A stretch of 64,000 nt of DNA, from positions 1 to 64,000 of the forward strand of contig JALMLS010000411.1 of assembly GCA_038496445.1 (NCBI GenBank). The letters run 5' to 3'. A model generated the notes under the pieces. It saw only the letters and a program-made list of their open reading frames with translations, did no database searches and had not been told where the DNA came from. This document shows, piece by piece, positions 21,701 through 24,332 of this stretch (its first letter is position 1; the number at the start of each line of letters is the position of its first letter). Source of the stretch: Trichosphaerium sp. ATCC 40318 (Eukaryota > Protista > Tubulinea). Both the position numbers and the translations under genes were made by a program.

Positions 21701-22064
21701 GTACTGTCAAGTGGACAGGTGTCTTTAATGTTTTAGATCTCGAAGAGTGTTTTGACTTTGATGGTATGACTACACTAGCTTCGTTTGAATCCATACCAAT
21801 AAACATATTTAGGCGCTCAGGCAATCATAAACCAGAATGGAAGAATTGCAGGCTCAATTTGTGTTAACAGGATGTAAGTGGCCGTTTTTTTGAGATTTTT
21901 TTTTCTTCGCGTTACATTATGCAATCAAAAACTGAAGGCTAATCTTTTTTGTTATCAGAGCTCCTGTCGATGAAACAGACCCTGAAGCTGGATTTATATG
22001 TGAACCAACTGAACTAGAATTCGATGAACCATTTGACGATGAAGATGAAGAAAACGATAACTAA
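15777..22064 (+). CDS. Large secreted mosaic protein: signal peptide, inactive trypsin-like (lysyl-endopeptidase-type) domain, two beta-rich repeat domains, VWD domain, EGF repeats, acidic C-terminal domain
   Basis: AALVLCCLVSASVG signal; ICGSSDLQNARCY...CTGF...IYIPQ...HVCD...LGMHHC; EGLIGFWNNDPSDDL...QFANSW (VWD); CNGNGRCLENGTCICAEGYSGPLC and CSENGRCSTNGLCSCYYRYEGEAC (EGF). Confidence 0.75.
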
Positions 22065-22182
22065 ATGACCAAAAGGGGGTGTTCCGTTTTACCCCCATAA
22101 AAGATGTAGATTTATAAATAAATAGTATTATATAATGTTCATACTTTGTTTGATCTTGTGATGGGGACTGTGTTTATTGTTA

Positions 22183-24332
22183 TTAAATACAGCCTGTGCA
22201 GCTGGCAAACATATTATCTTTCGATTTTACTTGTGCAGTACAGTTACATCGACGTACTGCATCGACATTGCCTATATCCATGTAATTGTGTACAACCAAA
22301 AATTGAAGATTCTTTGCAAACTTTGTGGTTTCAGAAGCTTTTGATTTGTCTGTAAGATAATCCAAAATGTTAGGTATCTTCACGCCTGGCCTAGTGCTTT
22401 CTTTTATAATCTATCAAATTATGTCAGAAGTAGAGCTGGACATATCAGATTCGTACTTTCTTCAAAGAGCGGCTGGAAGCCCAGCCTATGCCGCTTTTTC
22501 TTAATTTTGGTAATACACTTTGCATCTTTTTGTAAAACTGTTCTCCATCGAATAACTGAGTTATTGGCATTGAGGAATGCGCTGAGGTATTTATAAGACA
22601 CGTTGTGACTCTATGATAACAATAAGTTTGCATTGGAGGAAGGGGAGGGGAGTACATACGCGCAATGTGGAGAAGGTCTGATCATGTATTTGCCATAACC
22701 CAACATGGAGATAAACGGCTCAAAAGCAGATAAAATAGTGACAGGCAAAAAATCCTGTGGTGTGATTGGGTGAAGTGCCTTTGTTTCTACAACGCATTCA
22801 TAAGGGAGACGAACATAAAAAATGAAGACTTACCACAAGATACTTGTGAGACCCACTCCAAACTGGTGTATAAATCCATACAGTCCTCATAGGTATTACC
22901 TAAAAGTGGTGTGAATTATGGATTGTGACAAATTTTAGATAACAAAAAAGATGAGAAAAGGGCACCTGGTTCGAGCTCTTCTATTGTATCTGTTGGTACT
23001 GATCTTTGTGAAACAACACCTAACGGATCACCATTTTCTTTTGCTTCCCTAGCTTTGATTTTCCTAAGTTTTATATCTTGTTTGACCTTGAGCTCTGCTT
23101 GTCTCTTTTTTATCACACTAAACAATAAACACCAATTTAAGAAAACGAAACAAAAAAGAAATCTAAATTCTGTTACCTTGCCCGCACTTTCTTTACTACA
23201 TCCTGTGGTGGTCTCTCCATTACGAACTCTATTAGCCTTACAAAACCATAGCATTGACGCAATGTATCCATGAGACGGGATATACTTGGATACGGAGGCT
23301 CAATGACGAGTGTTATAATCAGTTGTATCCCGTCAAACTCTCTCAGAGTTGCTAGAGTGCTGCTTATCTCTTCTTCGCATTGTCTTTCATCGCCCTTCCT
23401 CAAGTAATATCTAAAACATACACTTGTCAACTAACTACTTAATCACATGAAAGGCCAGTATTTGTACTTGATGTTTGGAAATATTCTAGGTTTCAAAAAT
23501 GCAGAGTCATCAAGATCAGCAATGGCAGCCATTCTCTCATGTGACAAGTCAATGAGGATTGGTATCCCTCTTAATATCTCGCTTATATACAAGATCTTGG
23601 TATTGAGGACTTGCATGTCTGTAGCCAGTTTGCCTATGAGTCTCAAAATGAACTAAATGACAAAAAGTGTTAGAAGAAAATGTGACAAAACTCGACTCAA
23701 AAATTAAGTTTAGGAGTTTAACGATTACCTTGTGCGTCTTTGGATACATTGCGAGCATGTCAGTGACTTGTTTGTGTATTTCCTCATCTGTGAGGAAGCT
23801 GCCCTTGTTGAAGAGTACTAGCTCCATAACAAGTGGTAATTTATCGTGTGTTGGCGCTTTTTTGGATGTAAATTGGGATAGCTCTTCAATATCGACTGGT
23901 TGATTCGCTACAGATTGGAAATGATTACTAAAAGCAAAAATAACAAGGCGTACATGTTGAAGGTGTTTTTAGTGAGTAACTGAGCAGCTATTAACGTCAG
24001 TGCGAAGTTTCTGTACGCATTTCGAAGTTACCTTTTTAAAAAACCCTGTATTTTTGCTTACAAGCACTCGTTGTGGTCCATGGCGCTCACAACTAGCTTA
24101 TATAAGCGTGGAATTCGAAGCATCGCTGATATACTTTCAGTCCGTTTAAAGTGACGTACGGTGTGATAATCCATATGCCGGCGCCAATTTGAACAACTTC
24201 GGCGTCTTTTAGAACAGCTCCTAGCAAAAAAATCAGATAGTGCCACTAATACGACCGCTCACCTCTGCTTTCAAGTAAAGCACACCGCGGACAAATGCTG
24301 CGAGTGTCGTATAGCTTCTGAGTTGCGCTCAT
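22183..24332 (-). CDS. Tetraether-lipid-synthase (Tes/GDGT-MAS, MJ0619 family)-like protein lacking the radical-SAM CxxxCxxC motif
   Basis: N-terminal TRSICPRC...AEVV...CERHG; internal DFLPV and RPSPHCA; C-terminal HNYMDIGNVDAVRRCNC...FASCTGC. Confidence 0.6.

Follow-up and report, generated by a model that had tools for sequence, protein, structure and literature searches.

Tetraether synthase counts as a lipid enzyme of archaea, with a patchy occurrence in bacteria, and to our knowledge eukaryotes neither make nor use tetraethers. In the described enzyme, Tes or GDGT-MAS (MJ0619; structures 7TOL and 7TOM; IPR034474), several sets of residues are invariant across canonical sequences (residue numbering of GDGT-MAS after PMC9433317): the rubredoxin iron site (C9, C12, C33, H36), the N-terminal auxiliary cluster (C73, C77, C80, H83), the cluster of the radical S-adenosylmethionine (SAM) type (C98, C102, C105), the GGEP motif (G144-P147), and C338, M439, C455, Y459 and C470. 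Its C-terminal domain holds a cluster adjoining two lipid pockets (PMC9433317). Here, we examine a minus-strand gene located at 22183-24332 of a 64,000-nucleotide stretch from the tubulinean protist Trichosphaerium sp. ATCC 40318 (contig JALMLS010000411.1, positions 1 to 64,000; hereafter “the window”), which a first-pass annotation had read as an intron-rich relative of archaeal tetraether synthase without the radical SAM motif. As judged from sequence profiles and a predicted structure, this gene belongs to a protist family that is homologous to Tes/GDGT-MAS over its full length, keeps the overall architecture of the enzyme, and has lost its radical-generating site.

Searches of Pfam, NCBIfam, and the Protein Data Bank (PDB) sequences with single exons of the gene returned nothing meaningful, as single exons of this gene have neither the length nor the similarity for it. 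An exhaustive search by phmmer, with exon 12 as its sole query, matched 87 proteins, 28 of them at E ≤1e-10, and many of the matches were 420–600 residues long and aligned at their own C-terminus. Members of the family are found in Amoebozoa (Cavenderia fasciculata, DFA_11780; Acytostelium; Physarum; Planoprotostelium fungivorum, PROFUN_11363; Dermamoeba; Arcella; Pellita), apusomonads (Thecamonas trahens, AMSG_08973), ichthyosporeans (Chromosphaera perkinsii, Nk52_evm43s745), CRuMs (Diphylleia rotans), hemimastigotes (Hemimastix kukwesjijk), centrohelids (Pterocystis), and heteroloboseans (Percolomonas cosmopolitus); several come from genome assemblies and the rest from transcriptomes, where prey contamination is possible. 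We built a hidden Markov model (HMM) of the family from an alignment of 28 full-length members (A1), and counted motifs over 49 full-length members. The window protein was tested exon by exon rather than as the joined 516-residue protein: exons 1, 2, 3, 5, 6, 7, and 9–12 match the family HMM in strict colinear order, the large ones at E-values between 1e-12 and 2.6e-32, well outside what chance would give, and exons 4 and 8 lie within variable linkers. By exon-wise hmmsearch and hmmalign, all family-invariant residues are present, i.e., P202, D301, D321, F322, G341, C351, H446, M449, D450, D455, C462, and C480 (here and below in the numbering of P0020, a homologue 54% identical to the window protein over exon 12). 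On these matches, the window gene is a complete member of the family. DFA_11780, AMSG_08973, PROFUN_11363, and Nk52_evm43s745, all deposited as hypothetical proteins, share every one of these residues with it and are probably its orthologues. A full-text literature search, locus tags of the database members included, yielded no description of eukaryotic Tes-like proteins: published Tes work mentions eukaryotes in general terms only, and database entries read “hypothetical” or “uncharacterized”. As a side observation, a 49-residue “hypothetical protein [Escherichia coli]” (WP_175566211.1; P0103, in the cluster of P0023) shares a 90% identity cluster with a PX-like member of the family, and is probably a eukaryotic contamination of a bacterial assembly.

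The relationship to Tes is shown by profile-to-PDB searches, profile–profile alignment, structure comparison of a homologue model, and language-model features alike, bearing out the kinship proposed in the first-pass annotation. Searched against all PDB sequences, the A1 profile had GDGT-MAS (7TOL/7TOM) as its sole significant match (E 1.4e-15), covering the N-terminal ribbon and residues 307-491. Aligned with hhalign to genuine Tes sequences, i.e., those of Methanocaldococcus and of three bacterial metagenome-assembled genomes (MAGs) fetched with a back-translated motif, A1 matched both proteins end to end (probability 99.0%, E 4.2e-18, 417 columns). One of the fetched genes is annotated as “tetraether lipid synthase Tes”, M. 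jannaschii MJ0619 is among the relatives of the fetched genes, and the Tes consensus that had been quoted for this locus (CxxC...CxxH, CPxxCGLC, CxxxCxxC, HPHCG, and MDxxNxDxxRxxxC...PFC) holds in these real sequences. The family HMM matched all canonical Tes proteins tested (122/122), and exons 1, 3, 10, 11, and 12 of the window align in the correct order to a canonical Tes HMM. Within the homologues, Pfam recognizes PF23545, Zn_ribbon_HMPTM, at scores that attain its cut-off (up to 42.7 bits, for P0020); HMPTM is the former name of MJ0619.

Fold comparisons were made with an AlphaFold2 model of P0020 (pLDDT 87.7, pTM 0.89). Foldseek placed 7TOL first (E 6.5e-22, TM 0.67), the next matches lying at ~1e-4, and VIA-align superposed the model on 7TOM over 424 residues (Z 25.8, rmsd 4.1), followed by the radical SAM enzymes MoaA, viperin, and SuiB at Z 10-12. 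An ESM Atlas shape search and the language-model features both returned Tes clusters. The P0020 model has the four-domain Tes fold with its partial TIM barrel of radical SAM type, minus the N-terminal auxiliary domain. Overall, the family is colinear with Tes along its length and shares with it the rubredoxin-like domain and the partial TIM barrel; the C-terminal domain, also shared, contains DFxP, xCG, MDxxxxDxxRxxxC, and a last Cys. It differs from Tes by a rubredoxin hairpin with 7 more residues, by two more conserved C-terminal Cys, by its occurrence in eukaryotes and its richness in introns, and, in some lineages, by fusion to FYVE or PX domains. MoaA, viperin, SuiB, and ChlB have a central barrel of radical SAM type in common with the family, but are far less similar to it than GDGT-MAS is, and have neither the rubredoxin domain nor the Tes C-terminal domain.

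Next, we compared the two families motif by motif. The radical SAM motif CX3CX2C is absent from the window exons and from all 49 full-length members, these 49 also having no looser tri-Cys arrangement outside their FYVE domains, and the core columns of the family alignment hold no conserved Cys. The absence of CxxxCxxC, proposed for this locus in the first-pass annotation, thus extends to the whole family surveyed. PF04055 has no match in the window exons or in the eukaryotic homologues, while all of the 120 canonical proteins listed carry it. In hhalign, exon 5 is set opposite “IDLTNRCNLxCPxCFA”, and GGEP, which follows barrel strand 2, aligns with “KxxGxL” of the family (RLIGKL in the window). 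The CPxxCGLCxxH site is replaced in the window by the Cys-free exons 4-5 (LLSYSLKTPSTSNQPVDIEE), its columns being unaligned or non-Cys in hhalign, and the N-terminal auxiliary domain has shrunk to a short linker that is poorly modelled in P0020. No Tes chemistry would be possible since the radical SAM cluster, the GGEP SAM motif, and the N-terminal auxiliary site are all lost: on its sequence, the window protein is unable to form the 5'-deoxyadenosyl radical, and hence is no tetraether synthase. With the radical-generating site missing, the C–C coupling of two phytanyl chains is expected to be absent.

Two other parts of Tes are retained. At the N-terminus, the window has a rubredoxin-like site C14-X2-C17-X27-C45-X2-H48, encoded by exons 1 and 3, with a spacing of X27 in the family compared to X20 in GDGT-MAS (PMC9433317), and no member whose N-terminus is aligned lacks any of its Cys or His. 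At the C-terminus, C351 (48 of 49 members), C462 and C480 (47 of 49 each) take the positions of Tes C338, C455, and C470, and H446 (47 of 49) that of the labile Met439; all four are present in the window, together with C460 and C483, two further frequent C-terminal Cys. Tes Tyr459 is not conserved. The domain corresponding to the cluster and lipid pockets of Tes is the part of the family best conserved with it. The metal-site ligands, whose retention had been proposed for this locus, and the auxiliary-cluster ligands, for which it had been suggested as a possibility, are near-invariant in the family. A third near-invariant set consists of charged residues at the C-terminal tips of the barrel strands (E111, D/E178, D/E182-R183, GDE213, and E270-R271-x-P273), and the Asp residues of DFxP and MD....D, common to Tes, are invariant.

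The gene itself is intact. From three-frame translation, the raw sequence, and RNA contigs, we resolved it into 12 exons and 11 introns (Table 1), the exons summing to 1548 nt, i.e., 516 codons, with no in-frame stop between the ATG at 24332-24330 and the stop codon at 22185-22183. RNA-type contigs of runs X1-X3, from three studies, lie spliced on the gene, which is thus transcribed: they span exons 2-12 continuously and support ten joints, all CT..AC on the plus strand and GT..AG on the minus strand. Ten introns are therefore RNA-confirmed and intron 1 is predicted, all being GT..AG and 42-76 nt long across 22411-24262; at the exon 8 joint, the cut was moved by +2 to obtain GT..AG. The intron-rich character noted at first holds, and so do the protein strings that had been quoted, all on the minus strand: TRSICPRC (exon 1), CERHG (exon 3), DFLPV and PSPHCA (exon 10), MDIGNVDAVRRCNC...FASCTGC (exon 12), and the Cys-free SNQPVDIEE...LPLVMELVLFNKGSFLTDEEI (exon 5). 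The first-pass annotation had overlooked exon 4, a 34-nt micro-exon at 23954-23987, without which the reading frame does not close, and which a gene finder blind to exons of this size would skip, disrupting the frame. An overlooked exon with CxxxCxxC would, by the terms of that annotation, have refuted its reading, but exon 4 encodes no Cys. Other runs differ from the window at four positions, three synonymous and one a V to L change, and tblastn with relatives detected no more than one colinear copy in the window. The gene is conserved across distantly related protists, its splicing is intact, it is transcribed, and its variants are mostly synonymous, all of which speaks for a function that has been maintained. 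The family is a rare example of a radical SAM enzyme that became a cluster-reduced protein, yet remained under selection.

Some relatives are linked to membranes through added domains. FYVE and PX domains bind phosphatidylinositol 3-phosphate (PI3P). An N-terminal FYVE occurs in five family members and a PX in two, with one more PX-like by eye; since the FYVE- and PX-bearing members sit in different parts of the family tree, PI3P-binding modules were gained more than once. GOLD_2 is a membrane-trafficking domain, and sub-threshold similarity to it is found in a ~100-residue insert between the barrel and the C-terminal domain of P0045 (Pellita catalonica) and P0095 (amoebozoan). The FYVE and PX fusions point to a lipid-related and so far unstudied component of protist endosomes or phagosomes, testable in tractable amoebae. 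In one intronless, FYVE-fused member (P0014; L007:2711-5788, on an 80-kb metagenomic contig), the gene stands head-to-head, at ~320 bp, with a class I SAM-dependent methyltransferase gene whose Pfam matches include CMAS (cyclopropane-fatty-acyl-phospholipid synthase family), a pairing that may be due to chance.

Taken together, we lean, by a modest margin of confidence, towards a non-radical, metal-binding, lipid-associated derivative of Tes acting at endomembranes. The rubredoxin-like metal knuckle CX2C-X27-CX2H and a six-stranded partial TIM barrel are retained; in such a protein, the C-terminal ligands (three Cys and the His at the Met439 position) would hold a metal, probably as Fe-S, and lipid tails would be bound in the hydrophobic pocket inherited from Tes. 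It would serve as a lipid binder, sensor, or transfer module without radical chemistry, and in several lineages the added FYVE or PX would bring it to PI3P-positive endosomal or phagosomal membranes. We propose this because the C-terminal ligands survive and the C-terminal domain of GDGT-MAS adjoins lipid pockets. The role of lipid binder, sensor, or scaffold had already been suggested in the first-pass annotation, and the recurrent FYVE/PX fusions in relatives lend it indirect support. Several points weigh on the other side, i.e., the window protein itself has neither FYVE nor PX, the predicted structure belongs to P0020 and not to the window protein, the near-invariant charged residues of the barrel would also suit a new catalytic or ligand site, and the additional conserved C460 and C483 could mean a metal site unlike that of Tes. 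For the window protein, the bound metal and lipid, the location in the cell, and the role are inferred.

TIM-type and radical SAM enzymes have their active sites where the barrel strands end on the C-terminal side. The near-invariant E/D, E-R, GDE, and ERxP residues of the family occupy these very ends in strands 1 and 3-6, leaving room for a new enzymatic activity in what had been proposed to be a pseudo-enzyme. The barrel may have been refitted with polar catalytic residues, or the C-terminal Fe-S cluster and His may perform a non-radical or non-canonical chemistry, e.g., hydration, dehydration, or redox, on a lipid or another substrate. Such an enzyme would also account for the invariance of the Asp residues common to Tes (DFxP, MD....D) and for the strong conservation across supergroups; however, no catalytic motif is recognizable, Pfam and NCBIfam yielding a zinc ribbon only, and the same residues may equally be structural or ligand-binding. 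We regard this as the foremost alternative, though probably not the correct one. A structural adaptor, in which the Cys/His sites would bind zinc, no lipid ligand would be held, and the Tes fold would offer a protein-interaction platform on endosomes, is unlikely: although the N-terminal domain is a zinc ribbon according to Pfam, and endosomal adaptors typically have FYVE/PX fusions, what is best conserved with Tes is precisely the domain of the cluster and lipid pockets, and a plain scaffold would need no conservation of four cluster-ligand positions, the Met-to-His position included.

It is highly improbable that the gene still encodes a canonical radical SAM synthase of tetraethers or other membrane-spanning lipids, its motif hidden by an exon or assembly error. 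One exon had indeed been overlooked, but it is Cys-free, the RNA contigs run without a gap over exons 2-12, homologues of many taxa that are intronless or derived from transcripts also have no motif, and GGEP and PF04055 are missing as well; a missed Cys-bearing exon is ruled out by the RNA contigs and by these homologues. Finally, the loss of catalytic motifs is all that would speak for a decaying pseudogene or a bacterial contaminant without function, to which we give next to no credence, as it is contradicted by a 516-codon frame open across eleven spliceosomal introns, spliced transcripts in three studies, eukaryotic genes on both sides, the presence of every family-invariant residue, and mostly synonymous single-nucleotide polymorphisms (SNPs).

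To place the family relative to prokaryotic Tes, we analyzed a tree with 43 sequences of the eukaryotic and 24 of the canonical type, the latter from Methanocaldococcus and mainly Acidobacteriota and Planctomycetota, with no labelled Asgard or TACK sequence. The two types are split by one long branch (100% SH-aLRT support), with the eukaryotic clade attached in an unresolved polytomy and the amoebozoan sequences largely together, a pattern that fits a single origin and a single loss of the clusters. The nearest canonical relatives differ by method: the structure atlas points to archaeal clusters and language-model features to bacterial clusters, and these two and the HMM scores are not in agreement. 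Bacterial Tes-like proteins from Acidobacteriota, Planctomycetota, and Patescibacteria MAGs, which belong to the family of archaeal Tes, score E 6.5e-27 to 5.7e-7 against the eukaryotic profile, with a Patescibacteria-MAG protein (L005) and P0138 at the top; unlike the eukaryotic family, they have PF04055 and every cluster motif. The Tes gene of L005 (L005:380-1909, Patescibacteria-group MAG) has the best canonical score against the eukaryotic profile (87 bits), and is 52% identical to the Methanocaldococcus enzyme vs 39% and 43% for two other bacterial Tes, a closeness for which transfer between domains, or else a problem of binning, may be the reason.

The family provides a concrete gene for a phylogenetic test of whether the archaeal partner in eukaryogenesis had tes, a live point in the membrane-transition debate. 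One scenario, which we hold to be doubtful, is that the family dates back to the last eukaryotic common ancestor (LECA) as a relic of tes from the archaeal host of eukaryogenesis, its radical chemistry having been lost after the switch to bacterial-type lipids and the protein having been retained on PI3P endomembranes to sense or handle lipids in an Fe-S-dependent manner. If true, the archaeal ancestor of eukaryotes would have had tes, contrary to Chen et al. 2025 (PMC12042123), who infer that this ancestor was without tetraethers since most Heimdallarchaeia and Hodarchaeia have no tes.

The coordinates of the exons and of the neighboring genes are collected in Table 1. The gene is closely packed between its neighbors: it converges at its 3' end with a plus-strand gene, and its start is divergent from that of a Dbp5/DDX19-like helicase gene.

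Table 1 Exons of the Tes-like gene and adjacent features in the window (HMM positions refer to the family HMM unless stated otherwise).
Feature	Position	Strand	Content	Match or support
Plus-strand neighbor	21838-22066	+	Acidic tail DEPFDDEDEENDN; stop near 22064	~120 bp from the 3' end of the gene
Exon 12 and stop	22183..22410	-	LQFLVVHNYMDIGNVDAVRRCNC...ASCTGCI; coding 22410-22186; His 22290-22288 at Tes Met439 position; Cys equivalents of Tes C455 and C470; two additional Cys	E 2.6e-32
Exon 11	22457..22610	-	VTTCLINTSAHSSMPITQLFDGEQFYKKM; resembles Tes “iPvtRfiDve”	E 1.6e-15; direct match to canonical Tes HMM, positions 375-415
Exon 10	22660..22786	-	PQDFLPV...MIRPSPHC(A); DFxP 22743-22754; Cys 22664-22662, equivalent of Tes C338	E 1.9e-15
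Exon 9	22834..22899	-	NTYEDCMDLYTSLEWVSQVSC; start of C-terminal domain; family-invariant Asp	
Exon 8	22966..23117	-	Lys/Glu-rich variable linker from barrel to C-terminal domain	Unaligned part of the family alignment
Exon 7	23177..23410	-	YYLRKGDE...IQLIITLVIEPPYP...VRLIEFVMERPP; barrel strands 4-6; conserved GDE and ERxP motifs	E 4.5e-26; 3 SNPs from other runs, all synonymous
Exon 6	23468..23652	-	FILRLIGKL...IPILIDLSHERMAAI; barrel strands 2-3; conserved D/E and E-R at strand end	E 3.1e-21
Exon 5	23729..23907	-	NQPVDIEE...LPLVMELVLFNKGSFLTDEEI; barrel strand 1 and loop (about 23777-23893) replacing Tes CX3CX2C; no Cys	HMM 81-136, E 1e-12
[quoted passage not shown]
Exon 3	24032..24092	-	(P)CERHGPQRVLVSKNTGFFKK; CX2H half of rubredoxin-like site at 24091-24080	HMM 47-65; aligned with “CpeHGef” of canonical Tes
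Exon 2	24160..24220	-	AVLKDAEVVQIGAGIWIIT; beta-hairpin joining the two metal-binding knuckles	HMM 29-43; 3' joint 24160/24092 in RNA contig of X3
Intron 1	24262-24221	-	42 nt; AG/GTGAGC...TTTTTGCTAG/G	Predicted
Exon 1	24263..24332	-	MSATQKLYDTRSICPRC; first CX2C of rubredoxin-like site, Cys codons 24293-24291 and 24284-24282	HMM 4-24, E 1e-6; also canonical Tes HMM “slCPeC”; donor AG/GTGAGC predicted, outside RNA contig coverage
Dbp5/DDX19-like helicase gene	from 24679	+		Start ~350 bp upstream of the gene

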